This document shows, in pieces, positions 2,988 to 64,000 of a DNA stretch of 64,000 nt. Where the stretch lies: the NCBI RefSeq assembly GCF_006345805.1, contig NC_042998.1, forward strand, positions 49,476,001 to 49,540,000. The letters are read 5' to 3'. The position numbers were made by a program, and so were the translations under genes. Every line of letters begins with the position of its first letter. Positions within the stretch are counted from its first letter, which is position 1. The stretch is from Octopus sinensis. Taxonomy: Eukaryota. The notes under the pieces are model-generated. The model was not told the origin of the DNA. It made no database searches and saw only the letters and a list, made by a program, of their open reading frames with translations.

Positions 2988-3135
<148 letters not shown>

Positions 3136-21287: not shown

Positions 21288-21325
<38 letters not shown>

Positions 21326-25819: not shown

Positions 25820-26007
25820 TAATAATATTTTGACACAAGACTAGTAATTTCGGGTGAGGGACTTCAGTATTCAACTGGTACTTATTCTAATTGACTCCGA
25901 AAGGATGAAAGGTAAAGGCAAAGTCAACTTTGGTGGAATTTAAACTCAGAACGTAATGATGGACAAAATACCGCTAAGCATTTTGCCCGGCGAGCTAACG
26001 ATTCTGC

Positions 26008-29050: not shown

Positions 29051-29248
29051 TAATAATAATAATAATCCTTTCTACTCGGAAGCACAATGCCTCAAATTTA
29101 GGAGAAGGGATTAAGTCGATTACATCGATCCCAGTGCTTAACTGGTACTTATTTAATCGATCCCAAAAGGAGGAAAGGCAAAGGTCGGCCTCGACAGAAT
29201 TTGAACTCAGAAAGTAGCGGCAGACGAAATACCGCTAAGCTCGCCGCC

Positions 29249-36031: not shown

Positions 36032-36098
<67 letters not shown>

Positions 36099-36768
36099 AC
36101 ACACACACATACATACATACATAAATAAAAACATATATATATATATATATATATACGAAGAGCTTCTTTCAGTTTCCGTTTACCAAATCCACCCACAAGG
36201 CTTTGGTCGGCTCGAGGCTATAGTAGAAGACATTTGCCCAAGGTGCCATGTAGTGGGACTGAACCCAGAACCATATGGTTGGAAAGGAAGCTTCTTACCA
36301 CTGATCTACACCTGCGCCTTTAAGTTATTAAAATTAATGGAAAATCTTCCTATGGACCAAGGAAGATTTCTACTTGGCCACGAATTCCCTATAAACTGGA
36401 CAAAAGGTGCTGATCAAAAAGAAAAAGAAAGAAGAAGCAAAAGTAAAAAAGAAACAAAAATAGCGTTTTTTAAACAAAATCCCAAAGTTTCCAATGGAAA
36501 ACTATCCAAAACATAGTAATGTAGATGAAAATAGAATAACTCAAGACTGTCTGCTATCTTTTACTTGTTTCAGTCATTGGATTGCAGCCATGGTGGGGCA
36601 CCGACTTGAAGGGTTTAGTCGAACAAATCGACTCCAGTACTTAAAGCCTGGTACTTATTCTAGTAGCCTTTTTTGCCGAACTGCTAAGTTACAGCGTAAT
36701 CAAACCAACAGTTTTCAAACGGTGGTGGGTGACAGACACAGACAGACAGACAGATACACACACACACG

Positions 36769-41044: not shown

Positions 41045-41117
<73 letters not shown>

Positions 41118-41473
41118 AAACCGCTGTCAGAGAAAAACCATTGCTGTGGGAAAAGTTCTGTTGCAGTGTTAATTTAAATTTCGCTATGGCGGATCGAATC
41201 CACTTCATGCATGCAAGGTTCACTACATATACATATATATACATATATATATACATATATGTAGTGAACCTTGCATGCATGAAGTGGATTCGATCCGCCA
41301 TAGCGAAATTTAAATTAACACTGCAACAGAACTTTTCCCACAACAATGGTTTTTCTTTGACAGCGGTTTTACATTTTCCAGATGCATTTAGCTAGGCCGA
41401 AATAATGTTTTCACTACTTGACCCTTTCTAACCTCTTCTACTTCACCAAAAGCTATTTCTCTGAACCAAAATA

Positions 41474-42801
41474 CAAGGTTGTATCAAAAGGTCGCTGGAC
41501 TAATTCTGAAGCGCACCTATAGATGGCATCACACAGTTGTGTGCGCAAGGAGAGCTGGCAGTGACCTCCATGAAGCAGTTTGCCGAATGAAATCGCTGTG
41601 TTTACTTTGCAAGTTGTGAAATTTCTGATTTTGTGACCACGTGTATGCTGTAGTCTGCAATTTCGTCATGGACAGGAAGTTAGAACACAGAGCCAACGTA
41701 GAATCTTGCATTGAACTTGGGAAGTCTTCTACAAAGACATTGAGCATGCTTCGGCAAGCTTATGGCAACAGGGCAATGAGTCTTATAAAATGTTTCAAAT
41801 GGCACAGATGCTTCAAAAGCGGAAGAATGTCTCTGGGAGACGATGTGCGATCTGGAAGAGCTGCCACGAGCGTCATCCCCGGAAATGTGAAGAAAATTCA
41901 TCAGCTTGTAAATGAGGATCATTAAAGGACAATCAGCGACATTGCTGATATTGTAGGTCTTTCATATTGGTCCGTGTAAGCAATCCTATCGTCTGAATTG
42001 AACACGAAGCGTGTCTCTGCCAAGTTTGTCCCTTGCCTGCTGACCTCTGAGCAGAAAGAACATTGCGCCGAAGTCTGTCAAGATCTCCATCTGTGTGTCG
42101 CTGACGACCATCCTTCATGTTGAAGACCGTCAACGGTGACGAGAGTTGGGTTTATGGGTACGACCCTGATACAAAGCAGTAGTCATCACAATGGAAGTGC
42201 CCTTCATCTTCATGACTGGAGAAGGCACAACAAAACCTTAGTTCAATCAAGAGCATGCTCATCGTGCTTTTCGACATCCGCATTATTGTGCATCGAGAAT
42301 TCGTCTCCCAGAGCCAGATTGTCAATTGAGAGTTCTGCGACATTTTAAAGCGTTTGAGAGAGGACATCAGCCAAAAGCAACCAGATCTGTGGAGCTCGAA
42401 GAATTGGATTCTTCACAATGACAACGCACCCTGTCACCCACCTCTTCGCACTCGTGAGTTTCTTGCCAAAAACAACATGCTATTGCTTCCGCACCCGTCC
42501 TATTCACTAGATTTAGTACCTGCAGACTTCCATCTCTTCCCAAAGATAAAACGGCAGCTCAAAGGTTGCCGATTTAACACCGTTTTAACACCATTGTCGA
42601 GATCCAGAGCAAATTGCAGAAGGTCCTCAACTCGCTAACAGAAAACGACTTTCAGGCCGGTTTCCAAAAGTAGCAGGAACACTGGGACCGGTGTATTGCT
42701 GTGCATCGTGACTGTTTCGAAGGAGACGATATAAAAACTTAGATAAATAAGTTATTTTTTTATTAAACATAACTAGTCTGGAACCTTTTGACAACAATTC
42801 G
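41474..42801 (+). mobile_element. Near-full-length mariner (DD34D) transposon, pseudogenised
   Basis: TA-flanked, about 1.33 kb, imperfect TIRs. Transposase from 41667 with GDESWVYGYDP, HNDNAPCH and YSLDLVPADF; several stops and frameshifts. Confidence 0.92.
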
Positions 42802-42881
42802 TATTACAACTGAAAATGGTACGCATTTCTATATTCTACATTCAGCATAAATGCAATACACGTCAATATACAAAGGATTTA

Positions 42882-43094
42882 AGGCGGCGAGCTGTCAGAA
42901 ACGTTAGCACACCGAGCGAAATGCCTAGCAGTATTTCGTCTGATTTTACGTTCTGAGTTCAAATTCTGTCGAGGTCGACTATGCCTTCCATTCTTTCGGG
43001 ATCGATAGATTAAGTACCAGTTGCGTACTGGGGTCAATCTAATCGACTGGACCCCTCCCCCAAAATTTCGGACCTTGTGCCTTGAGTAGAAAAT
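42882..43094 (+). mobile_element. SINE-B copy with TSD, about 180 bp upstream of the first visible C3-like exon
   Basis: aatatacaaaggattta duplicated at 42865-42881 and 43095-43111. Confidence 0.85.
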
Positions 43095-43270
43095 AATATA
43101 CAAAGGATTTACTTTTTTAAAATTATAAATGAGGTGATATTTATATATTGTAAGAATATGTGATCATTGTAAATCCATATACCGTTATTGTTTTCATATA
43201 AATATCTTTGTATTTATAAATGCCTTCTTTGAAATTTCTAATGTCTGAATATATTCTTTCCGGAAAATAG

Positions 43271-43428
43271 CACCGAATATATGATCTTCATGCCAAAAGT
43301 TTTCCGATGCGATGAAAATGAATCGGTCCTGCTGCAAATCTTCGACTATTATAACTTATGTGTGCGAATAGAGTTACTTGATGTTAACACCGAGCAAGTA
43401 CTGAAGAAATATGTGAAAGTATTTGAGG
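43271..43428 (+). CDS. Complement C3-like / thioester-containing protein (A2M/C3/CD109 family), first visible coding exon (MG1 start)
   Basis: aatag|C acceptor (phase 2), G|gtaagt donor (phase 1), 158 bp open: TEYMIFMPKVFRCDENESVLLQIFDYYNLCVRIELLDVNTEQVLKKYVKVFE. Aligns by eye with C3 [23 protein letters not shown] and A2M YMVLVPSLLH. Confidence 0.8.
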
Positions 43429-43600
43429 GTAAGTACATTTTATGTTTTTCTTGTTTGAGTCATTAGACTGCGACCAGCCATGCTGGGGCACTGCTTTGAA
43501 TTTTTAGTCGAATGTATCGACCCCAGTACTTTTATATTTTTTAGCTACGGGAATATGAACACACCAACACCAATTGTCAAGAGGTGGAGGGGGGCACACA

Positions 43601-43650
<50 letters not shown>

Positions 43651-44418
43651 TATACGACAGGATTCTTTCATTTTCCGTCTGCCAAATCCACTTACAAGGC
43701 TTTAGTCAACCTTGGGCTAGAGTGCAAGACACTTGCCCAATGTAGCACCCAGTGAGACTGGATTCAGATCTATGTGATTGGGAAGCAAGCTTCTTACCAC
43801 ACGGCCACGCGTGCACCTAAACAGCCACGCCCATGCCTGTGTGTATAACTTTCATGATCATCATCTGGTCAGGGGACTTGCCCTGATAAGCCTCGTTGGT
43901 CATTCGATCGCTGTATGTCTGATGTGCACATGTCACAGCTTCAAATGATAGCAGTAGTTCATTAACTGAACTGGTTGATCCTAGCCTTTGACAGTCTATT
44001 GACGGTTCATCTACTTAGCATCTAGTGATATTCGCCATTGACTTAATAAGTTTATCTGCAGAAATAGTTCACATCCACCGCGCTACATCCTATGATTTCA
44101 ACATAACCATGGCTTGGGTGGTTACCGGATACTTGACCTTGTCAGGCAGCCACCCGTGATTTAACCCGGGTCTGTTTATTCCACATTTAGAACTAACTTC
44201 TAATTAATCAGTTGCTGGGACCACGACAGCTATGGGTTAATTATATGTAATTTTAAATTAAATTTAAGGGAACCCAGTAACCCCATTTACAAATGCTTCC
44301 AGTTCCAACTGGTCTTATTCTTATACATTGTATATTTTCTAGTTGTTATAAATATTTTCTTATTTTTCATTGTCTGAAGTTTTAAACTCTTTAAGTGTCG
44401 TATTTATGTACTTTTTAG

Positions 44419-44646
44419 AAAACCAAGTTTTATTCAACATCAGTGTTGAAGGAAATGAATGTCTGAATGATGAAGTGATTTTGAATATTAATGGATATAA
44501 ACCACTACGTGTCATTGAAGGAACTCAGTTGTGTAGTAACATGATTGATGATTCAATTAATATAAAACAAATACTTCCTGTAAAGAGAACATTTGGGTAC
44601 ATTTTCATTCAGACTAATTTGCCCATTTATCGACGAAACGAAAATG
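44419..44646 (+). CDS. Complement C3-like / TEP, next exon (MG1 end, MG2 start)
   Basis: tactttttag| acceptor, G|gtgagt donor, 228 bp, phase 1-1, in frame with the previous exon. Ends KQILPVKRTFGYIFIQTNLPIYRRNEN, matching the family motif GYLFIQTDKxIYxPG. Confidence 0.85.
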
Positions 44647-45499
44647 GTGAGTAATTACTTTATATTTTATTAAAAATTCAATAAAATAAGTTTAATATTA
44701 TAATTGATTCAGTTTAAGAGTTTTAATATTTATTGATTTCTAAGGTGGCGAGCTGACAGAAACTTTAGCACACCGAGTGAAATGCTTAGCAGTATTTCGT
44801 CTGTCTTTATGCTCTGAGCTTAAATTCTGCCGAGGTCGACTTTGCCTTACATCCTCTCTGGGTCGATAAAATAAGTACCAGGTGAACACTGGAATTGATT
44901 TAATCAACTTAGCCCATCCCCAAAACCGCTGGCCTTGTGCTAAAATTGGAAATCAATATTTATTGATTTCGAGTTTTTTCATGGTGCCTTAAATTTATGA
45001 GGAGGTGGGTAATTTGTAATGTATAATCAACTACACCGCTACTCACATGACCATTATCCTTCGAACTATTTAAAGAATTCTTTCTACTGTAGGTACAAGG
45101 CATGAAATTTTCGAGGAGGTGGGTGAGTTGATTAAATTGACTGGTACTTATTTTATCGACCCCGAAAGAATGAAAGGCAAACTCAGTTTCGGCAGAATTT
45201 GAACTCGGAACGTAAAGCCGAAAGAAATGTTACAAAATATTTTGTTCGATATGCTAACACATCTTTTCTACTCGAGGTACAAGGCCCGAAATTTTGGGAC
45301 AAGGGGCCAGTCGATTATATCGATCACAGTATGCAACTGGTGCTTAATTAATCGCTCCTGAAAGGACAAAGAGCAAAGTCGACCTTGGTGGGGTCTGAAC
45401 TCAGAACGTAAAGACAGACGAGATACTGCTAAACATTTCGCCCGGTGTGCTAACGTTTCTGCCAGTTTGATTATGTTGAAATCAGGGTTAATCTAACTG

Positions 45500-46370
45500 A
45501 TAAAGATTTCAAATAAAGATTGTGTAATGCTGGCTGTTTTACAGAGTTTCCACTATCATTCTTTGTTTATAAAGTGATTTTTACTCCACCACAGTGGCTT
45601 CATTCTCATAGAATATGTATTCAACGAGACATTCCTGAGGTTTCACTTTTTATCAAAGTATTTTATTGTTTTTCTATTCTGGTTTTCCCTCTTTATAAAG
45701 CTTTCATAAAGTACTCATTATGTTAATAAAGGCAAGTCATTTTAATTCACCCAATTCTTAGGCAGGATTTTGTCAGACTATCTTCGGAGTGCTGTCATTT
45801 CTTCAAGACTCTTTTGATATAATATTGTCTACATATGTTTCATATTTTCTCAGGCAAATATGTTCCTTTAAGCAAAACAGGCTGCAGATATTTTTGTGTT
45901 TTTTAATACATGCAAGTGGATGCAGGTCCAAAGTAGTGTGTAGTTTTTCAAGAATGTATGTTTTTGATGGCATTTTAATTATTCCAAGTTATTTCATTTG
46001 TGAAGGGTGTTTTGCTCCATGTTGATGATTTGATAATTCCCTTTTGTCACTACAACAATAAATTTACATGTGAAACTTTAGAAAAATCTTGTAGAATATA
46101 CTGTGTTGCTTACAGAATTTAATTAGAACATATTTTTGTATAAGCCACTACTTATTTTTTCAAGGTTCCAACTCAAAACCACAAAACGAATTCATACAAA
46201 AATGTACTAATAAACCGTAGTTATTTTAGCTTCCCATTGCCTTTTGAAAACGTTTCATCCATCAGACTTGATTTCTGCAATGTTACAAGTTTCTGTGTCT
46301 ACATTCTAGATTATTATATTAAACATGTTCTATTTATTCTTGATTGAAATATTGAGTGTAATGTTCTACC
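45500..46370 (-). mobile_element. Highly decayed CR1/L2-type RT remnant
   Basis: ILQDFSKV-SHVNLLL..KGII resembles LDFSKAFDKVSH..LL.KL...GI; many stops. Confidence 0.35.
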
Positions 46371-46384
46371 AATGTTCCTTGTTA

Positions 46385-46598
46385 ATTGTTATTATTCATG
46401 GTTTGCACTAATGTTTTGCATTCAGAATCAATCTCCTTGGAAGTGCGTCACAACCAGATTCTTTAGATATCAAAAACTTTTTTGAACAATTCTTGCTGTT
46501 CCCAACAGAGCAGATTTCTGAAATAATACAACTCTTGTAGCTACACCAATGTAAATAAGTTAACTGGCAAGTCTGTTGGTGATGGTACCAAGGGTACC
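46385..46598 (-). mobile_element. Short REL-LINE 3' end fragment
   Basis: VIGTLG..FQKSALLGTARIVQKVF*; (AAT)n on its 5' side and aataataac on its 3' side. Confidence 0.7.
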
Positions 46599-46603
46599 TA
46601 TAA

Positions 46604-46629
<26 letters not shown>

Positions 46630-46649
<20 letters not shown>

Positions 46650-47178
46650 GAGTGAGTGAGCAGTGCATGCCATCAAAGTGACACTGGGGTAAAATATACG
46701 AATCCTAGTATACCCATCATGACTACACCAGGCACATGCATCACAACCATGTGTGCGCGATATGGTGATTTCATATCAAGATAAACAGCACATGACCTAG
46801 CAGGTGGGGCCTAGTTAGAATTTTCTTCTGGTCAAGTAGCCCATCCTGCTCAAAAGGTTCTTGAATAAGGATTGTTTAAGGATGTTGAACGAACCACCCA
46901 TGTTTCCAAAGGTGAATTATCCAAACCTTCAAGAATTCCTTTCAACTCACGTCTATGATGCTCCCCCACTACTTCTGCTCGTGATCAGAGATGCACATAT
47001 TGTCAGCCACTAAGGGACATGGTCAACTGGTTAAGATCAAACAACTGACAAGCAAATCTGTGGTACTTAGCAGAATATTTGCTGTAGCCCATCTTTTATT
47101 CCAAGACTAAACAATGTACATGATAACACTTCCAATCAGTTAAGATGAGAAGCCATGAGAGCCACTGTCTGATACTGC
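46630..47178. mobile_element. About 550-bp non-coding interspersed element embedded in (ATT)n
   Basis: Sharp boundaries with (ATT)n tracts on both sides; no ORF or TIR seen. Confidence 0.5.
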
Positions 47179-47186
47179 ATCCGGGC

Positions 47187-47236
<50 letters not shown>

Positions 47237-47624
47237 TATTATTATTATTAGTAGTAGTAGTAGTAGTAGTAGTAGTATTTTTTGTTGTTGATATTATTAT
47301 TATTATTAGTATTAGTATTTTGTTGTTGTTGATATTATTATTATGGGCACATGGTCTTGTGCTTTCAATTCTTAGACCGGGTAGTGCGTTGTGTTCTTGA
47401 GCGAAACACTTCATCTTACGCTGCTCTGCGGTCATGTCGGCACCTGACGCATGGCACACAGTGCACCTATTCAGGAAACGTCGATTTGATGGAGGGAGTG
47501 AGCTAATGTGCAACACGAACATTTGATTACTCTAAATAAATCATTTGTGCATGTCGTTCGGTGAAAGCTGAACACTCCTATGTTGTCTCCGACAGGAGAG
47601 GCCATCATCATTATTATAAGTAGT

Positions 47625-48005
47625 AATACTATCTATTACGCTAGTGCATGCTAATTTAGTAAGTAAATATTTTATCTTGAGGTTTTGTGACAAGTCTCTT
47701 CAAATCCCAATAATTATTCTTAGAATTCTTGCAGAACACAAGATGATATTTTTCTGCAGGTCGACAATGCAAGTTTCTGTTCTAATTTCTTTCAGTCTTT
47801 TAGGTAGCATTTTGGGTGTTGTGCCAAGTGCACTTGTTACTACAAGAATAATTGTTGGCTACTGTTTCCTCAGTTCTCTGATTAGATCCTGGAATTTCTC
47901 AATGTTTTCCATTTCTTTGATATCAACTCTGCTATCATAAAGAATTGCAAAATCCATGATCTTCCTCTATAATCTATAGTCTTACCCGGTCTTCTTGCCT
48001 CAATA
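47625..48005 (-). mobile_element. REL-LINE 3' fragment
   Basis: IMDFAI..DSRVDIKEMENIEKFQDL..LVVTSALGTTPK..LQKNIILCSARILR. Confidence 0.7.
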
Positions 48006-48226
48006 GTATGCTTTTGTTCTTTTACTTGTTTCAGTTATTTGACTGTGGCCATGCTGGAGCACCACCTTTAGTCGAATCAAATCGACCCCAGGACTTATTC
48101 TTTATAAGCCTAGTACTTATTCTATCGGTCTCTTTTGCCGAACTGCTAAGTTACAGGGACCTGAACACACCAGCATCGGTTGTCAAGCGATGTTGGGGGG
48201 ACAAACACAGATACACAACACACACA

Positions 48227-48277
<51 letters not shown>

Positions 48278-48553
48278 GATGGGCTTCTTTCAGTTTCCAT
48301 CTACCAAATCCACTCACAAGGCTTTGGTCGGCCCGAAGTTTAAAAGTTGTTCTTCTCCATAATGGTAATTTGAAGCCCTCCATTCCTATTACACACTCCG
48401 TTCATCTTCATGAATCATTTGAAAATATGGAAATATTTGCATATATCTATCGAAAAACTGATACGTGTTGCATACAAATGGAGTGAAGTTTTGAAATCAG
48501 CATAGAAAATTAGTCTAAAAAAGTAGGTTTGTGTATAATACATTTAATTTTGT

Positions 48554-48554
<1 letters not shown>

Positions 48555-48611
<57 letters not shown>

Positions 48612-48680
48612 AACCAGCACCACCAGCACCAGCACCACCACCACTACCGCCACCTCTTCTTCCTCCTCCTTCTCCTCCTT
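48555..48680. repeat. (ACT)n(ACC)n(CTC)n compound microsatellite
   Basis: Directly visible. Confidence 0.9.
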
Positions 48681-49350
48681 GAAGGCAGCGTGTTGGCAGT
48701 ACCATTAGCGCGCTTAGCAGTATTACTTAACATTTTCATTTTTCGTATTAAAAAATGTTAATGTGTCAGTGACATTTTATGACTGTAACTGATTCAGTTA
48801 ATAGAGAAAGAGAAGTTAAACTTCCTTGTTGATGTTGATCCTAAGAACGTACTCTCTATTTATACATATTTACAAAAGCCAATGTGAGAGTTTCTCTCGT
48901 GGTAATGGTAACTACCGCAGTATAGTTTGTTCTAACAGAGCATCCATGTTCAAGTGGGGATAACTATTATGTCTCGGTATTAATACTACCTTTGTCGTTG
49001 GTGTATATTTTAACAAGCTCACTGGCTAACCATGGCACCCGTTCCTGTTCTGACACGGTTATTTTATATATCGCTGGCTGGGAGATAAGTCGCTGCTATC
49101 TGTAGCGGTCGGGCATCCATCATTGATAAACCCAAGGGAGGTCAGATTCACGTGATCTGGTGATATCGGCGCTGAGGTGATGGAGATTTATCTCACCTCT
49201 AGCGATTTAAACAAAAGTGCATTTTGCACTAAAAGTCAATACAAGAGTTTCTCTCATGGTATTTGCCGCAGTATAGTTTGTTCTAACATCCACATTTAAG
49301 TGGGGGATAAATATCAACTATTTATTAGTTTGCCGATTGCTGTTCAGTTA

Positions 49351-49862
49351 CCGTAAATCCTCGAGTATAGTCCGCACTTGAGTATAATACGCAGGGGATT
49401 TTTAGGAGGCTGTACCTCTGAAAAACCTAAACCTTGTGTATAATACGCACCCCTTCTCTAACTTGAGTCAAGGAGGTCTATATAACATCCTTGGTTTGTA
49501 AAAATGTATACGATAACGTACTTTATTATTATTGTATATATAACATAATGCAAATGTGTCGCATTTTTGTGCATTTTGTTTGCAGAAAATAAAGAAATAA
49601 CAGTAATAACGTTTAATAAATGTTGCTTACTGCAAGTTATGGATGATCCTTTTATGACTTCATTGCTTTCAGGCTTAGCTTAAGGTATTTTTGCGCCCGA
49701 CATCACAAAATGCATCTGAATAAACATTGCCGGACAGCAAATAGAGACTCGAACATTGCTTAGAAAATAATTTTCCTTTTTAACCTCGTGTATAATACGC
49801 ACTAGGGATTTTGACCATTAAATTTTGGGAAAACAATGCGTATTTTACTCGAGGATTTACGG
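49351..49862. mobile_element. Tc1/mariner (pogo/Tc2-type) MITE
   Basis: TA-flanked TIR ccgtaaatcctcgagta / tactcgaggatttacgg; repeated gtataatacgca subterminal motif. Confidence 0.85.
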
Positions 49863-51597
49863 TACACTTCTTCAGGTCATTATGAAACAACCTATCTAAT
49901 GGTTCTGAGAGGGTCACGTAAAATACCATTAAGCTCTGGCATCTCTTGAATAAAAAATTTGTTATTATTTTTAAATCACTATTTCAATGTATTGAGTGTT
50001 GTTTTTGATGACTAATAGCCTGTCATTATACAACACTTGACAACTATCTGAATTGGTCCCAGTCAATATTTGGTAGCGTAGCTGGGAAATGGGTGGCTAT
50101 GGGGGAACTCTGCCCCGAGCAACGCTTTTATTGAGGCAGCACTTTTTAATCTACTGTATAAACCAATATAAAGGGGCAAAAATAGGGGGCCATCACACAT
50201 AAGGACTGCCCCGGGTGGTACACACTCTAGCTACACCACTATCGATATTGTTTCTTTCTAGTCATAATGGTCGATACTATTATTTCTACCGTTCAATTTT
50301 AAAAGCGTTTGGGATTAATTATCAATAGATTCTATTTCCTCTTCTGTTTAACCTTGCATGTTGAATATTTCCGCAAGTATTACTGATATATTGTAGTACA
50401 TAATAAAAACAATCTAATTGCAAAATCTTTCTGAATCCATTGTTATTCTAAAGTTACTTTTAATAATAAAAAATAAATGCGCCCTTTTAAAGCCTAGCTA
50501 GGCTCATGGGCCTGGTTTCCCGGTTTCCATAGCGTATGTGTCCCCAAGCTGGATGGAACGCCAGTCCATCGCAGCGTTACTCATTTTTGCCAGCTGAGTG
50601 GACTGGAGCAACATGAAATGAAGTGTTTTGCTCAAGAACACTACGCGTCGCCGGGTCCAGGAATCGAAACCACAATCTTACGATCATGATGCTGACACCC
50701 TAACCACTAAGCCACGCGCCTCCACAAAGTTAGTTTTACTTTATCATAATCATCGAATACCTTCTCATCTCTCCTTTGGTATTTGTTGTTCTCAAGTATC
50801 GATTAACCTCTTTCCTTCGAAATTGCTGGTTTTTTGCCTAAACCAGAGACAAAAAGATAAAAAGACAGTGAGCTAGTAGAACCGTTAGAGTGTTGGAAAA
50901 AATACTTTTTGGCATTTGCTTTGACTCTTTACATTCGGAATTCAAATCCTGCCAATGTCAGTTTTGCTTTTCATTCCGCTGGGGTTGATAGAATAAAATA
51001 CAAGTCAAATACTGGATTCGGTGGTATCGACCCCCATCCCTTCAAAATGACTAGTGTTATACTTAAATCATAAATCATTAATGATAATATGTGTAACCTA
51101 GTGACAGAAAACAACAGCAGTTCAGAGAGCGTGCCTTCAAGAAATATTTCTTGTAAGAGATTCATAGTATTGCACTGCCTCTTGTTCAATGACAAAATGG
51201 CTTAGTAAAATACTTTAATCTTTAAAAGGTAGTAATTTTTCAATGCTATTATTCACTATTATTCATTGTTAGACATCAAGAATCTAATTATGATTACTGA
51301 ACTGAAACGAAAGCATTTTATAGTCTACTCATTTTCTTATGAGGTTTTTGAACTTAGAAAACAGTCTATTTTCTTTTTATCTATTAGTTGTTCAGTGCAC
51401 TTCCACACTGCTCTTTCTGTTAGTTTGTTGATAATTATTATGCCATATTTTGAATTGTAATTTTTGCCTAATCAGAGCTATTAGTTTTCTTTTTCTTTCG
51501 GTGTACATTATGTTAATGCCCAAAGTAAGAAGTACACCGGGCAAAAATACCGAAATGATTATATGCCTGTATATTTGTTTGGTTAGCTTTATATACA

Positions 51598-52050
51598 TAC
51601 TAGCTATTTTGACCCGTGCTTCACTCGGGTTTTGGTGGTGGTGTTGTTTTGTGTGTGTTGTCTCCTTTTCCTTTTCTTTTTTTTGTTCGTCTTCTTTGCC
51701 TGGTTCTTTTTATTGCCCTCTTCTTTACCCCCATTTCCAAAATCCCCCAAATTTTTACACCCACAATTAAAGATAACCGCCTCTAGCCCATGCAGCAACA
51801 CGAAAAGCCACCATTATCCAAACAGCGCAACCTGTCTATCCCATAAAACTCAATTTTTCCCATATTCCTCACCATGGCAACCAAACAGTATCCCCAAGCG
51901 ACTTGGAACCCTCCTCACACCATTGCCCACCCCATTTTACCCCCCAGTGTAAATTTTGACGCCAATCTGACCTTAAACCGTTCCCATACCAAAATGAGAC
52001 AAATAACCAAGAAATCAAACAACTTTTTCACATTTCAGCTTTATAGATAT
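51598..52050. mobile_element. Helitron/Helentron-associated (HINE/DINE-1-like) non-autonomous element
   Basis: Starts tactag..acccgtgcttcactcgggt (short stem) and ends cagctttatagatat. The same architecture occurs at 58093-58695. Confidence 0.45.
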
Positions 52051-52589
52051 TGATGTATGTGATAATGTGTGTGGTTCTCAGTGTTTATTTCATCGCTTAG
52101 TTTTGAGATAATAACTATTGTATATGAGCTTTTTAAATAGTTCCCATATTTGGCGGCACTAAATTATGTCCTCTGCAATTTTGTAAAACTCAACTTCTCA
52201 AAACAGGTATCGAAACATTTAGTCTCACATAACGATGTTCCCAGTGATCACAACTACATCCGCATTACACGTTTGCCTTTCCCTATTCTGGTGAGCTCAA
52301 TCGCGTTTATAAATTCTTTAAGTAGTGATGCGTACATCCTAGGAAATCTTTTTTTTTGTATCTAAAGTTTTCAAAACATTGTAGCTTCTTGTGTGTCAGT
52401 CTTAACGTCCATCATAAGACTAAATTCACTAACCTCGCCTACTTACATCCCAGCTGTCAGTCACTGCTTTTTATTTTCATATTGAGTCTACTTTACATTC
52501 ATTTAAAATTAGTTCAACCAAAGCTGAAAACATTTCTTTCTATCTTTATTGTACACTGCAAGAGTCTTCAAAAGTGCATAGTTCTTGTA

Positions 52590-53400
52590 CTAGAGGACAT
52601 TTCAACAAGTGCTCCATAGTTTACGTATCTTTGTCATATTCACACATGGTGGTGTTGGAGAAGTTATAATTCCATTTCTTGAGTATCACATTGACTCATC
52701 CAACATCATTCTTGGTCAATTAAAACATTTCCACCTTGCCCAGCTCACATCCACATTAGGTGCTAACTGTCTTCTTGCTACCCACTAGCGTAGTAAGGGG
52801 GCAGTAGTGGTGGCACTTTTAGGTCTGCTGTAGATAATATATGTTTTTGTGGGGTCTGGCGGGGTGGCAAACGGAAGAGCCTCCTCGGGTGACATAAACT
52901 CTAGCTAGGCTAGTGTTGCTACCACTTCTATTATTGATGAGGGTGGTAGGATGGTCTTTTCTTTCTTCCCTCAAAACAAACAGTTTCTTAACCTCGGTAG
53001 TGGTACTGGCCTCAAGGAAAGTAATATACTTAAGAAAGATTTTCCTCGATGTCAGCTGACTTTGAACTGGTATTTCGCCGAACATTTATTTTCTGCCGAT
53101 TACATTCCTTCATACGGATTCAAAATGGCTGGTGATGCCACACCTGCCGGAATATGGAGGCTGTCAGTTTCTGTTGGAGTAAACTTCCTGTGATCAGTCG
53201 ACACAAAGCATTAAAAATGGGATCTAGCTTCTTACCATCGATCGGTCTTTCCTGTACTAGCAGACTCAGCCGTGGAGTACTCAGCAGGATGTTCAAGTAG
53301 TCCGACACATGGTCTGAGGAGGATCGTGCTACTGAGAGTTGGCGCAATGTTTCACAGTTTTTTAGTTGGAAAGGGCACGGTTGGGTCTTAAATGAATTGG
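52590..53400 (-). mobile_element. Ingi/Vingi-like LINE 3' remnant
   Basis: LDPIFNALCRLITGSL..LHILAGVAP; C-terminal CEYD..TMEHLLKCP. Confidence 0.55.
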
Positions 53401-56400
53401 ATTCTTCTCATAATACAGTGTTAGCTGATCAAGAAAACTGATTACTTGTTATACTACCGAGAAATTTTAATCGTGTGCAGCAGCATACAAATCATCAGAT
53501 CATCATAAATCTGTGTGAATTACCACTTCCTGTTTGGTAATTGACGCAGGTACTGCAAAGCACGAGCAAGCACATTCGTTCCCTTGAGGCAGACTATTCT
53601 GTGCATTTTTGTCGACAGGAAACAAGTCTATTTTGGTAGCATTTTTGCTGACAGGGAACAACTTCGTTTACGTCTCAACACCATAAAAATATGTTCTCCA
53701 GCATTCTTTCATTCAGCTCTGCAAACCTGATGTCCTTAATGCTTGCTGAGCAGATACGGTTGATTGTATTGTATTCTGCATAGAAATCAACAAAAAATGT
53801 ACTGGTTACCATTCATTTTTCAAGGTCATTTTCGATGTGGTGTTTTTTTATTTTTTAAAGAAAGCCTATTTGTTTTTAGAATAGGTGTTACATCAGCTGC
53901 TGGCATTATTCCGTTGATGGTTAGGTGCTCAAAGAGATTGACTATTGAGTGTGATTGAGAAGAGTAAGCTCAGCATGTAACTTTTGAGGATTAATGTGTC
54001 TTCTTTGTTTCAGCTGTACTGTTACATGAATCGTCTTCTAGATCTTATGCAGTTTATATGCTGTCACATAATAATTGTGTAGCTGTAAGGACTTCGATGA
54101 CGTGTTCTGAGGCTTCCCTTTAGAAGTTCACATTACCATATTGAAAACTCACTAAGGACTTCTGTATTGTGTTCTGATACTGAGGTGACTTCGATCACAA
54201 AGGCTGCCCTTTCAAAATTCACATCACCATATTGAAAAACCCAGTAAGGATTTCGATATCGTGTACTGATATTGAGGTGACTTCAGTTACTAAGGCATTA
54301 CCATATTGAAAACTCAGTAAAAACTACAATATCGATAGTTTGCTAAAATGTTCATTTCACTTTCAGCAAAGTCATTCTTTTCAACTTCATTTTCTTGTGC
54401 TGTATTTTTGTTTTGTTTCTGTTTATTTTTTCCTGCCAATTTCTTTTATATTTCTATTAGCAATTTAACCCTAATATTTTCTTTGTCATAGAGTCCAGCC
54501 TTAAGATAGATATGATTTCTACAGTTGTAATTGAAGTAGTTCGACTACGAGCTCAGTTACTTCGATATGAAAAATGCCAACTTAGGTCAAACGGAACTCT
54601 GAGTACTGAAAAATAACCTTCCAGTGAAGTTATTTCACTATGAGTGCCATCTTTCTTTTATGTGATATAGAAGCTTCCTGACAGATGGTTTCATCAGGAA
54701 TTTCCTTCTATTAACATAGGATTACTCGAAGGGTCTGCCTTCTCAGTACATAGACGATCTGCTTATAGGATTAACAATATACATCCTTTCATATACGACA
54801 TTATCATTCATTTCTCCTTAACCTCTCGCTTACTGGCTTCCAGCACACAGACTATATATACGTGAGATGCAATATTTGTACAAATAGTACCTGTAACCCC
54901 CCATCTCCTTTATTTAAAGGAGATGGGGGGTTACTGCCATTCAACAATGCTAAGACACAATTCCTTCTTATGTCTACACCTATTTAAAGTCTCAGTCCCT
55001 TCAAATAGCAGGGCTTCACAATCTAGGTTGTAAGCTGTAAATAAATGAACTTCCATTTCGACGATGAATGAGTATTCATTTGTTCAATCTATGGACCTAT
55101 CTATTCATTATATATCATCTTGTATGTTAGTTGAGTATTCCACGGACATGTGTACCACAAACATAATCCTCGATCAGAATCAGTGTGACAGTGTTTGGCA
55201 AGGTTGGACTACAAGTAAAACCATCCGAAGGACTTCCATACAGTTTCTGTCCACCAAATTTCATTTACAAAGCTTGGAATGATCCAAGGCTATGATAAAA
55301 GATATTTGCTCCAGATGCTACGCAGTATGATTGAACCCAGAACATCATGATTACAAAACGAACTTCTTAAACACGATCGTAAGGGTGTGAGTTCGATCCA
55401 TGGTGGCACATTGTGCCTTTGAGCAAGACGCCTTATTTCACATTGCTCCAGTCCACTCAGCTGACAAAAATGAGTTGTACCTGTATTTCAAAAGGCTAGC
55501 CTTGTCACATTCTGTGTCACGCCGAATCTCCCTGAAAACCACGTTAAGGGCACACATATCTGTGGAGTGCTCAGCCACTTGCAAGTTAATTTCACAAGCA
55601 GGCTGTTCCATTGATTGGATCAACTAGAACCCTCGTCATCGTAACCGACGGAGTGCCAGTTATAACAACTACGCAACACAAGTGACTCACTTGTGGGACA
55701 GGCAATACTTAAGATATAAAAAATTGCTGGTTCTCTAGAAATCATAAACAGTGCTCATAATGCGTGTAAGGGAGCTGCAGATGCACACACAAACATTCCA
55801 GATTACATCATAAAACCATATGACTGACATGCAAGCTTTCTTCACAAACATTTTACATCTGGTGAACTTTCACATCACTATTCACATACACTATTGATGT
55901 ATGAGTATTCAGCTGTTTGATCACATGGACAGCCTAGTCATTGAATTAACATGCAAAGCGGTTGAGTATTCCGTAGATATGCATACTTTTAACTTAATTC
56001 TCAGGCATCTTGAGCAAGTCATTTCTACTAGAGGTGCAGGAGCGGCTGTGTGGTAAGTAGCTTGCTTACCAACCACATGGTTCTGGGTTCAGTCCCACTG
56101 AGTGACACTTTGGGCAAGTGTCTTCTACTATAGCCTGGGGCCGACCAAAGCATTGTGAGTGGATTTGGTAGACAGAAACTGAAAGAAGCCTGTCGTATAT
56201 ATCTATATATATGTATGTGTGTGTATATGTTTGTGTGTGTGTCCCCCAACATCGCTTGGCAACCGATGCTGGTGTGTTTACGTTCCCGTAACTTAGCGTT
56301 TTGTATTTTGTGTATTGCTGTGTGCATGTGTACTTGTCGTACCCGTCACTGTTTCACAACCAGTTTTGGCTTGTTTTACGTGTCCGTAACTTAACAGTTT

Positions 56401-57046
56401 GGCAACATAGACCGATAGTATAATTACCGGTCTTAAAAAAAAATAGGAAAAAAATTAAAGAAATAAAAACTACTAGAGTCGATCTGTTCCATAAAAACTG
56501 CTTTAATGTGGTATCCCAGCATAGCTGCAGTTTCATGACTGAAACAAGTAAAAGATAAAATATACTAATTAAATTTCTGGGGTCAGCTATATCGACTAAT
56601 CTCTCTCCATAATTGTTGACCTTATATATAAATCAAAAACCATTGCTCCTTACACCCTTCACCCCCATTTCAAATGCAGCTTATTCTTTAATTTTATAAC
56701 TCTCCCTATAGTGCAAATAATCTTCATACGCAATTACATATTTTTTTGACTGGATATCTGTCGTTAGTATTTAGAATAGACTGTTTACACTTAATATTTT
56801 GATTTTTTTAAAACATATGTTGCGTGATCATTACATCAGTAAATTGTTTTCTCTCCTTTTCCTATATCGTCATACTATCGTAGTAGATTTCTTATCAAAA
56901 GCAATAATTTTAGAACAAAGCAGCAGTTTTCTCAAACTATTCATCGCTACTCTTACTATTAATGCAACTCTTGTGTGTAGGGACTTCCACATAATTGGTT
57001 TGTTGCCTCAACCTATTTATATGATATTTTGGCATAGTTTCGGTAT

Positions 57047-57964
57047 AGTTTCGGTTGTAGTAGCACAGATTTCCGTCGATTTCCGTAAAAAACTTTTATT
57101 TTTTTACATAAGTAATGAGAGCGAAAGAGACTAAGAGGAAGCGATTTTACGACGAGAAGGTTTCACTTTGAAGTCGGCCTGTGTGTGTTTGATGGGGTGT
57201 GGGAGACAGACAGTATGTTGTGTAAGTGAAGTGCTTCTGTTAGTGTGTGTGAAGAGACAGACATACATATACACATACACCGAGTAAAAAATTACTATGA
57301 ATCGGCCATACATACATACATACACACACACACATACATAGATACATACACACACACACATACATACACACACACATACTTACACACACACACATAGATA
57401 CATACACACACACACATACATGCAGACATACATATACACATACACCGAGTAAAAAATTACACTGAATCGACCATACATACATACACACATACATACATAC
57501 ACATACACACATACATAGATACATAACATACACACACACACATACATGCAGACATACATATACACATACACCGAGTAAAAAATTACGATGAATCGTCCAT
57601 ACATACATACATACACACACACATACACACACACACATACACACACACACATACATAGATACATACACACACACACATACATGCATACATACATATACAC
57701 ATACACCGAGTAAAAAATCAGTTATCTCTCTCTTTCACACATTACTCTCTCTGTCTCTTCGCACACACTAACAGAAGCACTTCACTTACACAACATACTG
57801 TCTGTCTCCCACACCCCATCAAACACACACAGGCCGATTTCAAAGAGAAACCTTCTCATTGTAAAATCGCTTCCTCTTAGTCTCTTTCGCTCTCATTACT
57901 TATGTAAAAAAATAAAAGTTTTTTACGGAAATCGACGGAAATCTGTGCTACGACATGCGAAACT
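57047..57964. mobile_element. Foldback-like element: 215-bp inverted arms around a composite tandem array
   Basis: Arms 57047-57261 and 57750-57964 with 8 mismatches by manual comparison. Internal units start ccgagtaaaaaat at 57280, 57445, 57571 and 57706. Confidence 0.8.
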
Positions 57965-58092
57965 TCGCCGATATTTTAATATAACGACAGCTATGCCTGT
58001 CGGGCGAGTTAATGGTCAGAAAAACTTATCTGTATAACCATAAATACTTGCATTGTTCATCTTCAGCTTAGCTATTTTTAGTCTTTTAATAA

Positions 58093-58695
58093 TACTATCA
58101 GTATCGCCCGGCGTTGCTCGGGTTTGTTTCGACCATCTCATCATCATCATCATCGTTTAGCGTCCGCTTTCCATGCTGGCATGGGTTGGACGGTTCAACT
58201 GGGGTCTGGGAAGCCAGAAGGCTGCACCAGGCCCAGTCTGATCTGGCAATGTTTCTACGGCTGGACGCCCTTCCGAACGCCAACCACTCCATGAGTGTAG
58301 TGGGTGCTTTTTACGTGCCACCGGCACAGGTGCCAGACGAGGCTGGCAAACGGCCACGATCGGATAGTGCTTTAGAATTGGAATTTTTGAAAAGTAAAAA
58401 TTTTGCATTATGTAACTTGTGAACAGAAACATTAAGTGAACATTTTTCTGGTTGAAATACACCAAAAAAAATGGCGAAATAGCAGTAAAAAAAATCGTAA
58501 AAACTAGGGACTTTCATAGAAAAGAAGCACCTTTTTGATGTAAATAAATTTTGGTTAACACGGTCCGATTTGAATCTTCTATCATACTCTCAATTTTGGT
58601 CAACTTGCGCCGCAGGGTCTCGGAGGAGATAGTGTTAGTTGAAGGCTACCAAACCTGCCATACACAGACAACTTCAGCTTTATATACATAGAGAT
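58093..58695. mobile_element. HINE-like element carrying a nested SINE-C
   Basis: Starts tactatc..cccggcgttgctcggg and ends cagctttatatacatagagat. Confidence 0.45.
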
Positions 58696-60439
58696 TTACT
58701 TACGAAGGTGTAGAATTGTTAGCACACCGGACAAATGCTTGGCGGAATGTCATCCATTTTTACATACTGAGTTCAAATTTTGCCGACGTCGACTTTGTCT
58801 TTTCATCCGTTCGGGGTCGATAAAGTAAGTACCATTTAAACACTGGGGTCGATGTAGTCGACTTATCTCCCTCCCCTTAAACTGCTGGCCTTGTACCAAA
58901 ATTTGAAAAGAGGACGGTGAATTGGTAGTACCAGTTAAATGTTGGACAAAATTTCTTGCACTGTTTGTTTCAAATCGCTTCGCTCTGAGTTCAACTCCCA
59001 TCGAGTTATTATACTGCGGCCATGCTGGGGCACCACTTTGAATAATTTTAGTCAAACAAATCGATCCCAGGACCTATTTTTTAAAAAGTATGGTACTTAT
59101 TTTATCGGTCTCTTTTGTCGAACCACTAAGTTACGGGGATGTAGACACACCAATACTGGTTGCAAACGGTGGTTAGGGAAAGCAAATAAGTGAGAAGAAA
59201 TAGAATTAGTTGAAATGACCTTTTATTTTTATTGTCATCGTTACGCTGTAAGATGTAGTTTTGTAACAGGATGAGAGATTCCTGCACTGGATGGGTGCTG
59301 CTTGCATCCTTTACATTAAATATTAATTGAAGAAAGAGTGAAGATCTTCCGTTAACTTCAGCACTATAAATATTTATTCTTTGATTCGCAATATAAACAT
59401 TTCCTTCTTCTGGGCGAATCGGCAACTTAGGAGCTTATCGGCAGTAGTCAAATGGAGTGAGTCAATCCTGCCAGCTCAAGCATAGTGGGGAGGCCCCACG
59501 AGGTAGAAGCTCGAGAGAGCTGCTAAACACACATCTGTATTGTTCAGCTGCTGGCGTCCAAGAGAAAGATACAAGAGAATTTTGCTGCTGCTAGTTTTCT
59601 GTGCATGCGCATGAGGGAACTTCCTGCAGGCCTTCCGGAAGATTCCAACCCTGCGCATGCATGCTGGAGATTTCCAAGATGGCATCACTACAGTTTCTTC
59701 ATGTTGTTGTTATACACAGATTATTTGCCATTCTGGTTTCGATTCTGTAGGTAGTTAAATTCATCTTTTGTTGACTGCTAGGAGAACAGATGAAAGAAGG
59801 AGAGAGAGAAAGAGTAAAAGAATTTAGACAAGTAGAGAAGATGAAAGTTGTGTAGTCGCTCAGAGACATACCATATATGAAGTGTTCCTTTTAGCCAGGA
59901 GCCAAATGAAAGAGGTAGAACAGAATGTAAACAAGAACATCGGTTGGGGTATTTTCCATATTTTCCATATTTTCCAAGTTAATAAATGTGGGGATTTTGT
60001 GGAGTCAGCACATTAAACCAAAGCAGCAGTAAAATGGGATTCTTATCTTTTATCTTTAACTTGTTTCAGTCATTTGACTGTGGCCATGCTGGGGCACTAT
60101 CTTGAAAGGTTTAGTTGAATAATTTGATCCCAGGACAACTTTTTTTTAAAGGGTGGTAATTATTCAATAGTTTTCTTTTGTTGAGCTGTTAAGTAAAAAA
60201 AAAAAGCCCAACACCAGTTGTCAAGCAGTGGGGAACACACATACACACACACACACACTCACTCACTCACGCGCACATAGTCAGGCTTCCACACAGTTTC
60301 AGTCTACCAAATTTTCTCGCAAAGTATTAGTCAGCCTAGGGCTACAGTAGAAGACACTTACCCTAGGTGCCACACAGTGGGATTGATCCCAAAACCACAA
60401 TGTTGCAAAGCAAGCTTCTTAACCACACAGCCATAACAT

Positions 60440-61080
60440 GACCAATTGCTTTTATAGCCATCATCTGTTCTCCTGCTCCTTTATATTTTCAACAGTGGCA
60501 TTTCACATTTTTTCTTATTTGCCCTAGCTCATAATTTGTTTCCATCCTGTAGTCAAACACATATTTGTAAAACTCAAAGATTGTTTCTTCATAACCTTCA
60601 GACATCTGCTTAAGTTATGCTTTTTCATGAAACTGTAGCACCAAAATGAAGATTTAAGAATCTCAGTTGCTGGTATATTTCTCTTGTCTGCCAGTCTCCT
60701 TATCTCCAACATTATCCATCGTCATCTTTGTTGAGACTGTATATCCCAAACTTCATTGATTGTCTGTCTATAATTTGTGTGGTTTCCTTCATATGTAGAA
60801 ATTTTGCTTCTTTATGGCAAATCCACATATTTTCATTCTCATTTTATTTAATGTCTCCAGCTGTTTTTTCCATTTATGAATAACTTTTTTATGTTGGTGA
60901 TGGTTCTTATTGTCACTTAGTTGTCTGATTGCCATATAGCTTGGCATATTTAACAATTCATAGCTTTTAATTTGTGATTGTAGTTAGGTGGAAGCTGGAT
61001 TATTTGGTCTGACTGCATGCTGCTTCCAAATAAAACCAACTACAATATTCAGATCATATTAGCATGTTTATTTACAAATT
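60440..61080 (-). mobile_element. pogo-family transposase N-terminal remnant (Brinker-type DBD plus CENP-B HTH)
   Basis: KLKA..KYAKLYGN..KVIHKWKKQLETL; EIRRLA..FWCYSFMKKHNL (compare GWCxRFMKRHxL). Confidence 0.55.
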
Positions 61081-62470
61081 GATGTTACAATTAATTTACA
61101 ATACCAGTAGCTAGTGTGTGTGTAAGAATGTATGCTTGGCAAGAGGTGAAAGTGATATGCATTTGTGCTCGGCAAGAGGTGATCCTTTTAACATGAGGCT
61201 GGAGTGGCAAAGCTATCAGCTAACCAAGAAAATCTCTGTGAATCCTCTGCCAACCATGATTTCTTTGTGAAACTGCTTAGACTTTTCCATTAATCTTTAC
61301 AATTCACAAATATATTAGAATAATGACTGGCTGAAATATGGGCCAAGATCACCTAATAAGGACATTCACCACCAAATATGGAAACTCGATGCACTGTGAC
61401 CTTTGCTCATTACTGAACTGACAGGGTTTTGAATACTGATTACTGCTGTGTGTTTGTCTTCTGTGCATAGTTGCAAATGGTTGTATAGTGTTTCTTACCA
61501 GCTGAATCGCTAAACTGACAGATAAAAGATGGTGTCCATTTCTGTGATGCTTCTGTCTGTCTATATATGATGTGTGTGAAACATCACCAAACAAAAGATA
61601 TTACCATTGTTGGTAAACCCTTCTTACTGGATAATATCCAACATATAACAAAACTAATAAACATGATAATTATACTTTCTGGGATAAATTTATTACAAGT
61701 GAATACTAACTGTAGGTTTATATTACTTAATGGAATTCTACTGAGGACTGAAATCAGCTGTTAACCTTTATTCTACAACTTGTCTTTCAGTAATAAGATG
61801 CAGGATGATGTTTGGGGATTTTTTTTTCATTAACAGAAAAAGTATATGCAGAAAAAACCCCCAAATAAAAATGTAAATTGCTCTCTTTTAAATTTATTCA
61901 ACACAACATTTGTTGAGAGTATCATTTTAACTAGCCAAAAAAAAAAATATATATATATATATAATAAAAAAATAAATAAATAAAATAAAATAAAAATACA
62001 AAAGTACCCCAAAAGGGAATTTGAATATTTGATTTGAGAGAACTTGTGAGATAAGTAGAGGTCATAACTTGGGACAGCGAATTAAGTCAACCTGATTATA
62101 ACATTTATTTATTCTGAATGGAAGACTAACAAAAGTTAGCTTTAATAAAATTTGGATTTAGAATGCAGTAGGATGTAACTAAATATCTCACTGCAGCTTT
62201 TTAGTAATGTCATAGTAAGAGGTTAAAATGCTGTTGAGAGTCAACTTCATCTTTTATGTTTTGGGAGGTTGATAAAATTCTCATGAAGTATTGTTGTTAT
62301 ATAATGTGCTTTCAATTCAATTTTGGGGACTGATATTTATGTTAAAAATCCTCGTTATAAGATACAAGTAACTTTAAACAACGTTTTTGCAAGTGAAACT
62401 CATATATTTGTGTACTATAAAGAAAAGAGCATAAGAATTCAACTTAATTATTCTCTCTTTCTTTTTTCAG

Positions 62471-62541
62471 TAACAATACGTGTATTCCTTTTAAATGAAA
62501 CAATGCATATTAACAAGTACCATGTGCAAGTAACTTTGAAG
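62471..62541 (+). CDS. Complement C3-like / TEP, 71-bp MG2 exon
   Basis: ctttctttttt cag| acceptor, AAG|gtaact donor, phase 1-0. G+TA restores Val: VTIRVFLLNETMHINKYHVQVTLK, like C3 [24 protein letters not shown]. Confidence 0.8.
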
Positions 62542-64000
62542 GTAACTATTCTAAATTAGTTTCTAATGTTGTTTGTTATTTTGGGCAATTGTCAATTGAG
62601 TTTTGTCTGAAATGTTAACTTTTTACATTTTTATTTGATGTGGCCTATGCAATTTAAATTCTTGGACAATGAACTGCTGACATTACTTCTTCTTTTTCCA
62701 AGAAAAACAACACAGAACACATGCACAAGTCAGAATTACTTAGCATAACTAAGGACAGGATTAACCTTTACAAGGTACAAATCAGCTTTGTTTCAGGAAG
62801 AAATACTGCTGTTGTTGTCTCATTAGTGAGACAACTGTCTAGCATTTGTTGATATGGTGAAGACGTGATGGAGTTCCATGCTGTATATGCTAGTGGTCAC
62901 TAAGGGACCTAGGAATTGACTGTTTTTAGAATTACATTGTAGGGTAGGCATGAGAGGCCAAATTTGGCTAGTTTGAACATAGAACGGAGAATATTTGGGG
63001 CAGATATGACTGATTTAAATGCTAAAGTGTTAAAAAATGTTGTCATGTGATTGAGGGAGTTTTGGCCAGTGATCCTCAAACTAATGAATACTAGCCCCCA
63101 CCCAGCTAAAATATTAAGGAAATACTTTGCCTATCCCTGCCAATTATTAATGAGAAGATAAAATAAATTTTGCATCTATATACTTCTGAAGATTATTAAA
63201 GATAGTAATTTATACAATTCCTTTTCAGTCTTTGCAACACCCCATTCCTTGTCCCTTACCATGGGAAACACTGGTTGAGGTCACAAACACAGTTTATTCA
63301 TGATTTTTAAAATTTGATGTGACAGATGACATGTAGTGCCTAGAGGAATAGGTGTAAGTTAAAGCATTCAGAAATGGCGATGGAAGATTGAAATTCTAAA
63401 TAACATATGTTTTCAAGCTTTCAAAAAATATGGAAAATGTGATAAGATTTCGGATGACATCAAATTTAGCTGGAATGGTTATGTAGTTATTCAGTTATGT
63501 AATCAAAATGGATTTAAAAAAAAAAATGAAATTAGTTTTTAGTAACTAAGTACAGGCATAGCTGTGTGGTTAAGAAGCTTGCTTTGCAATCACATGGTTT
63601 TAGGTTCAGTCTCACTGCAGGGCACTTTGGGCAAGTGTCTTGTACTATAGCCCTAGATTGACCAATGCTTTGTGAGTGAAATTGGTTGATAGAAACTGTG
63701 TGGAAGCCTGTTATACACGTGTGTGTGTGTGTGTGTGTGAGTGAGAGAGAAAGTTTGTATTAGTCCCACACACTGTTTGACAACTGGTGTTGGTTTGTTT
63801 ATGTCATTGTAACTTAGCAGTGCCCCAGCATGGCTACAGTCCAATACCTGAAATAAGTAAAAGATAAAGGATAAATCACTGGCACCATAATTATGAATTT
63901 TTGGTACCTTTTGATGTCAAGAAAGACTCAGTTATCTCAAGCATTTCAACGAGCAAATGATACATTTCATCCTTAACTTCCTTATATTTCAGTTTTGCAC

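Follow-up and report, generated by a model that had tools for sequence, protein, structure and literature searches.

The stretch of DNA considered here (the window) covers 64,000 nucleotides of the Octopus sinensis genome (contig NC_042998.1, positions 49,476,001 to 49,540,000 of the forward strand), and positions are given in its own numbering unless another locus is named. It is AT-rich, with a GC fraction of about 0.38, and rich in repeats. Three short coding exons are embedded among these repeats and together specify the beginning of a putative thioester-containing protein (TEP), namely the first macroglobulin (MG) domain, MG1, and the start of the second, MG2. The exons and the two introns that separate them are as follows.

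43271-43428, plus strand: coding exon a, 158 nt, phase 2 in and phase 1 out, N-terminal half of MG1
43429-44418, plus strand: intron a-b, 990 bp, phase 1, holding a (CA)26 microsatellite and the copy 43608-43818 of a repeat resembling short interspersed nuclear elements (SINE-like)
44419-44646, plus strand: coding exon b, 228 nt, phase 1 in and out, C-terminal half of MG1 and start of MG2
44647-62470, plus strand: intron b-c, 17,824 bp, phase 1, lying within a Val codon
62471-62541, plus strand: coding exon c, 71 nt, phase 1 in and phase 0 out, further part of MG2

All three exons are bordered by canonical AG/GT splice sites. With a slash at each border, these read aaatAG/CACC ... GAGG/GTAAGT for exon a, tttttAG/AAAA ... 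AATG/GTGAGT for exon b and ctttcttttttcAG/TAAC ... GAAG/GTAACT for exon c, whose acceptor is preceded by a strong polypyrimidine tract. Once spliced, the three exons and one leading base give 152 codons without a stop, hence a 152-aa peptide, with intron phases 2/1/1/0. The exons had been proposed in a sequence-only reading of this DNA, the coordinates of which proved exact, as did its splice sites, open frame and phases. Exon a encodes (x)TEYMIFMPKVFRCDENESVLLQIFDYYNLCVRIELLDVNTEQVLKKYVKVFE(E). The product of exon b ends in the MG2 start motif ...ILPVKRTFGYIFIQTNLPIYRRNEN(V), which aligns to GFLFIQTDKPxYTPxQxV of C5, C3, C4 and A2M, and exon c continues with (V)TIRVFLLNETMHINKYHVQVTLK. That the gene was described as hidden among repeats is also apt, the SINE-like copies at 42880-43095, 43608-43818 and 44741-44940 adjoining exons a and b.

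The same three exons are found in another octopod, Argonauta hians, at a locus (BAAFZT010000059.1, hereafter L001, which ends at 25672) annotated with a hypothetical protein of 83 aa (GAB1607439.1, P0001).

L001 7321-7469: exon a', 149 nt, tblastn E=1e-16 against exon a
L001 9974-10198: exon b', 225 nt, E=3e-25 against exon b
L001 15587-15657: exon c', 71 nt, same length as exon c

Their phases, canonical splice sites, order and strand are those of the window, and no other exons are shared. The exon lengths differ by 9, 3 and 0 nt, a' and b' being the shorter ones, so that all differences are multiples of 3. The introns measure 2504 and 5388 bp in Argonauta versus 990 and 17,824 bp in the window. 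The MG2 start motif ILPVKRTFGxIFIQTNLPIYR is kept in both species. The Argonauta annotation joins b' to c' exactly as b is joined to c here, at the junction that had been read from the letters alone.

Over 148 aligned codons, the window and Argonauta share 59% of their amino acids and 64% of their nucleotides, and identity by codon position amounts to 0.71/0.79/0.43. The proportion of non-synonymous differences (pN) is 0.244 versus 0.768 for the synonymous ones (pS), the latter being saturated. Outside the exons, the two loci align at shared repeats only, whether compared by blastn or tblastx. Blastn between the window and L001 returns nothing but SINE-like repeats, the exons being too diverged as DNA, and the Argonauta peptide matches the window at the three exons and nowhere else. 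The codon-position identities, a pN far below the saturated pS and a conservation limited to the exons indicate, at the level of sequence comparison, conserved coding exons under purifying selection rather than chance frames. On the evidence of both genomes, the three exons are confirmed as genuine and spliced as proposed.

Several lines of evidence point to the TEP family. In a Pfam scan of the spliced peptide, MG1 and MG2 are the top families. A phmmer search over the full library (1.84 billion representatives) returned five proteins, three of which are genuine: the 83-aa Argonauta protein (62% identity, E=4e-20) and two fish C5-like proteins from Caranx and Astyanax (E about 1e-4). The two others (P0002 and P0003) were dismissed as repeat-driven. 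A word-indexed protein search with the same peptide gave no match, its index evidently being devoid of Argonauta proteins. Among PDB sequences, C5 is matched with E=3e-5 by the single peptide in phmmer and with E=9e-6 by a profile built from the window and Argonauta. This profile also retrieves bovine C3 (2.4e-4), C4 (3.9e-4), human C3 (0.005) and A2M (0.03), and all remaining rows are TEPs apart from a single chance match to a ribosomal protein, uS8 (E=0.5). TEP-family matches were thus obtained from both sources, in line with the family first proposed for the exons. An AF2 model of the peptide, built from a 24-row multiple sequence alignment (MSA), is all-beta, with ten strands and no helix. 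The top 48 matches to this model in a Foldseek search of the PDB are all C3, C5, A2M or CVF chains (TMq 0.42-0.49).

The strongest argument for the family is the position of the exons in Argonauta, where they stand ahead of a gene with A2M and thioester domains. This next called gene, some 6 kb further on and of the same orientation, encodes 1226 aa that match A2M_BRD (PF07703), A2M (PF00207), TED_complement (PF07678) and A2M_recep (PF07677, weak). MG3 can be read in its first exons, and the phase of the intron preceding 'YxYxKPV' is that of fish C5. Together with the PDB and phmmer matches, this downstream TEP body argues that the encoded product is, as initially read, the MG1 of a TEP followed by the beginning of its MG2.

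The Argonauta annotation appears to split one TEP gene into two models (L001 10001-15672 and 21902 onward). The 83-aa model begins at an out-of-frame internal ATG of exon b' and omits exon a', and the 1226-aa model takes as its start a Met codon inside the MG3 exon. Between c' and the MG3 exon, L001 15700-21860 consists nearly entirely of minisatellite and microsatellite arrays.

Taken together, these data support the view that the window holds the 5' part of a TEP gene (MG1 and the start of MG2), whose body would lie beyond base 64000. The three very probably serve as coding exons 2-4 in a functional but strongly diverged octopod cephalopod gene of the TEP/alpha-2-macroglobulin superfamily, and would cover MG1 together with the initial third of MG2. 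A signal-peptide exon would be expected upstream of exon a or beyond the 5' end of the window, and the remaining MG domains, the bait or ANATO (anaphylatoxin) region, the CUB domain, the thioester domain and MG8 would run off its 3' end. By analogy with the family, the product would be a secreted haemolymph protein, with MG1 and MG2 contributing to the rigid macroglobulin ring on which the thioester domain is carried. Once activated by proteolysis, it would serve to mark microbes or to trap proteases. Its secretion, thioester chemistry, immune function and subfamily are all predictions.

Various observations weigh against this assignment. Both Pfam matches are below their gathering cut-offs: MG1 reaches 21.5 bits (E=2.8e-4) versus 23.6 and MG2, a domain cut by the window end, 16.7 bits versus 32.8. 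The structure model is of low confidence (mean pLDDT, the predicted local distance difference test, 54.6) and TEPs were present in its MSA, so that the fold match is in part circular. No credible signal-peptide exon was found by strict and loose scans, by pairing the window with Argonauta or by upstream tblastx, all of which gave microsatellite or SINE matches only. Between 15.7 and 21.8 kb of L001, lists of open reading frames (ORFs), hidden Markov models (HMMs) and motif scans met minisatellites only and did not reveal the second half of the Argonauta MG2; the exons concerned may have diverged strongly, been lost or been masked by an assembly collapse. The N-terminal exons of Argonauta are thus joined to the TEP body by order, strand and domain logic, not by a complete model. 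Lastly, the evidence on the subfamily conflicts, since MG1-MG2 is closest to C5/C3/C4 and MG3 to CD109-like proteins and A2M.

Searches for other parts of the gene were likewise of limited yield. A TEP N-terminal HMM applied to all ORFs of at least 12 aa on both strands ranked exon a first and exon b eighth (E=2.4), the latter amid chance-level ORFs. It did not place exon c at the MG2 position, and nothing else in the window came up as a convincing TEP exon. Within the 17.8-kb intron, neither the HMM on ORFs nor the Argonauta peptide revealed an additional TEP exon, and tblastn with fish C5 recovered MG1 and MG2 only. In the 1.46 kb that follow 62541, no next exon was recognised by three-frame reading or by tblastx against Argonauta. 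An acceptor-like polypyrimidine-cag site at 63990-64000 (tatatttcag/TTTTGCAC, acceptor 63990-63992) is cut by the window end and could be the start of the next exon. A word-indexed protein search with the MG3-MG4 exons of Argonauta as query found no octopus orthologue or full protein. No RNA family reached its gathering score in Rfam.

The intron positions of the gene had been read as those of complement C3, and this point deserves attention for the subfamily. Introns were mapped on real TEP loci with an exact spliced mapper. Lengths below are those of coding exons from exon 1, except that the rows of the window and Argonauta start at exon 2.

Fish C5 (Caranx melampygus C5-like, L002): 68/196/160/71 nt, phases 2, 0, 1, 0
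Primate A2M (Sapajus apella A2M-like P0007, L003): 83/184/160/53/21/169 nt
Mytilus coruscus CD109-like (P0057, L004): 50/161/26/154/71/126 nt
Batillaria attramentaria CD109-like (P0054, L005): 62/161/26/154/71/126 nt
Window: -/158/228/71 nt
Argonauta (L001): -/149/225/71 nt

In a joint alignment of the six genes, the phase-1 intron in the Val codon (...YxPxxxV) always falls in one and the same column. Each gene also has the phase-2 intron by the N-terminal Tyr, at a position that agrees to within one or two codons. The 71-nt exon of phase 1 to 0 occurs in the window, in Argonauta, in C5 and in the two CD109-like genes; vertebrate A2M alone has split it. The deep intron conservation implied by the sequence-only reading is therefore real, given that these intron positions recur in C5, A2M and the CD109-like genes, yet it extends across the family and is largely to be expected. 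Of the junctions called C3-type, the Val intron and the 71-nt exon match fish C5 exactly; the phase-2 intron agrees in phase, its distance from the Tyr being two codons greater than in C5. Human C3 exons 2-4 presumably measure 193, 166 and 71 nt, lengths that agree with the C3 junctions cited in that reading. The claim that such introns favour C3 over A2M or CD109 is not supported, since both introns also occur in A2M and the CD109-like genes, and the 71-nt exon in the latter. Being common to every mapped TEP branch (all but A2M in the case of the 71-nt exon), these features have no discriminating power. A literature search found neither exon structures of octopod TEPs nor a TEP-wide intron map.

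The intron inside MG1 is more peculiar. It is of phase 1 in the window and of phase 0 in both C5 and A2M, where it lies 14-25 residues further on, a distance that depends on the alignment; a departure from C3 at this position (phase 1 instead of 0) had already been remarked on in the sequence-only reading. The nearest counterpart is the exon 2 of the molluscan CD109-like genes, of 161 nt and phase 2 to 1, versus 158 nt in the window (149 in Argonauta). However, the two MG1-internal introns are 16 columns apart in the MAFFT alignment, in a gap-rich and loop-rich region that is unreliable.

The annotation of the Caranx melampygus C5-like gene also calls for a remark. At L002 5255-6148, a 97-nt exon is joined straight to the MG3 exon, a join that probably omits an MG2 exon, and the gene is split into models of 350 and 966 aa.

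Among known systems, vertebrate C5, C3 and C4 (e.g., human C5, PDB 3CU7 and 6RQJ) give the best sequence matches to MG1-MG2, but their identity to the window peptide is just about 20-26%. The molluscan CD109-like genes have the same Val intron and 71-nt exon, and are the top-scoring group for the MG3 of Argonauta. They differ by an additional 26-nt exon, because they retain a phase-0 intron absent from the octopod gene, by an 'RPG' motif at the N-terminus where the window has 'FRCDENES', and by a very low similarity in MG1-MG2. Vertebrate A2M (human, PDB 6TAV) shares the phase-2 intron before QY and the Val phase-1 intron after FVQTDKPIYKPGQT, as well as a weak similarity at the MG2 start, but it scores below C5, C3 and C4. 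Furthermore, its equivalent of the 71-nt exon is made of 53 + 21 nt and its MG1 intron is of phase 0, whereas the window has a single 71-nt exon and phase 1.

The alternative that survives best is that the exons open a genuine complement C3-type gene, in which ANATO and C345C domains would follow downstream and the exon structure would be inherited from the C3 lineage. MG1-MG2 is indeed nearest to the C3/C4/C5 clade, as seen in the PDB E-values (C5 9e-6, C3 2.4e-4 and C4 3.9e-4 versus 0.03 for A2M), and CD109 (8S3O, 9FX2) and TEP1 chains are absent from the MG1-MG2 list up to E=10. In the same way, the octopod profile scores about 40 bits with fish C5 versus at most 27 with A2M fragments and less than 13 with molluscan CD109-like ones. 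Fish C5 is the sole non-octopod family recovered from the 1.84 billion representatives, and the N-terminal motif YMIFMPKVFRCDENESVLLQ resembles that of C5. In addition, C3 has been reported from another cephalopod, the squid Euprymna scolopes (PMC4361686). This squid is also reported with A2M, two TEPs and CD109 (PMC4361686), and prior knowledge therefore does not decide the subfamily.

Against a C3-type gene stand the intron positions, which do not discriminate, and the phase of the MG1-internal intron, which is not that of C5 and A2M and which, together with the exon length, matches the molluscan CD109-like genes. The MG3 segment of Argonauta obtains its best scores with CD109-like proteins and A2M, not with C5. 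C3, C4 and C5 have ANATO and C345C, but the record of the 1226-aa Argonauta product lists neither ANATO (PF01821) nor NTR/C345C (PF01759), such precomputed lists being liable to miss domains; the list of the fish C5 fragment likewise lacks ANATO and NTR, so that absence from a list is no proof. The length of the 1226-aa product would fit a TEP that ends at MG8, leaving no room for ANATO and C345C, and the model may be truncated. A true C3-type gene is thus unlikely, and the assignment to complement C3 is unsupported. A TEP devoid of the C3-specific ANATO and C345C modules is favoured over a true C3 orthologue.

A further possibility, distinctly less probable, is that of an octopod-specific and fast-evolving TEP lineage with a C3/C4/C5-derived N-terminus, in which ANATO and C345C were lost or never present. 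This would explain a C5-like MG1-MG2 next to a CD109/A2M-like MG3, and an N-terminus otherwise unmatched among the 1.84 billion representatives. If so, the product would be a 'stripped' complement-like opsonin.

It is very improbable that the exons are what is left of a TEP gene in decay, whether a unitary or a duplicated pseudogene, lying amid transposons and outside any working transcript. Such decay would agree with the absence of a recognisable exon 1, with the huge (17.8 kb) and repeat-laden intron, with the missing second half of MG2 in Argonauta and with the fact that the sole annotated protein found to contain these exons is the fragmentary Argonauta 'hypothetical protein' of 83 aa. 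However, large repeat-filled introns are usual in this genome region, and open frames, canonical splice sites and identical phases have been kept in two octopod lineages. Saturated synonymous sites, together with only 24% of the non-synonymous ones differing and length changes in multiples of 3, are unlike neutral decay. As for a chance open frame flanked by fortuitous splice-like sites in AT-rich DNA, many stop-free stretches of at least 90 aa do occur in the window, due to low-complexity repeats, but this explanation is effectively refuted by the exon-limited conservation in Argonauta, the codon-position pattern, the conserved intron phases and TEP-specific matches in two independent databases.

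Besides the TEP exons, the window carries two SINE-like families, reverse-transcriptase fragments of long interspersed nuclear elements (LINEs), mariner remnants and many microsatellites. Family 1 (about 215 nt, at least 12 copies, 71-88% identity) is found directly upstream of exon a and downstream of exon b. Family 2 (about 200 nt, with a (CA)n head) has at least 11 copies in the window. It is also present in Argonauta, as an inverted pair (L001 2271-2383 and 2583-2695), and therefore either is older than the separation of the two octopod lineages or is active in both.

42880-43095, 44741-44940, 45081-45258, 45264-45465, 58712-58897: SINE-like family 1
3135-3350, 17068-17204, 22146-22721, 25865-26006, 29069-29240: SINE-like family 1, continued
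36-217, 9911-10086, 16424-16579, 19604-19800, 21295-21497, 31510-31671: SINE-like family 2
36095-36301, 43608-43818, 56032-56242, 60235-60433, 63550-63743: SINE-like family 2, continued
41629-41922, plus strand: Mos1/mariner-type transposase remnant (HTH_48, E=5.8e-7), just upstream of exon a
42330-42635, plus strand: Mos1/mariner-type remnant resembling the C-terminal DDE region, no Pfam match
12499-13023 (plus strand), 26417-26956 (minus strand), 5109-5567 (minus strand): decayed LINE-type reverse-transcriptase fragments

The frame is broken between the two mariner remnants. The LINE fragments match RVT_1 (E=1.5e-19 and 1.9e-7) and zf-RVT (E=1.1e-4). SINE-like copies and microsatellites fill the 17.8-kb intron, along with a foldback element made of 222-nt inverted arms (57040-57261 and 57750-57971, 95% complementary) with a (CATA)n/26-nt minisatellite between them (57307-57705). 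A near-perfect palindrome of 129 nt is found at 41113-41241 and 41246-41374, and an assembly gap of exactly 100 N at 18925-19024.

The gene described here adds a new member, divergent and poorly annotated, to the well-known TEP family. Its value lies in annotation, and knowledge of how TEPs work is unchanged. It also calls for caution, since the phase-2 intron, the Val phase-1 intron and the 71-nt exon cannot assign a TEP fragment to C3. As no protein model with the N-terminal exons was found except for the 83-aa Argonauta fragment, cephalopod TEP models are probably truncated at their 5' end in repeat-rich regions. Such truncated models would distort the counts and phylogenies of molluscan complement-like genes.

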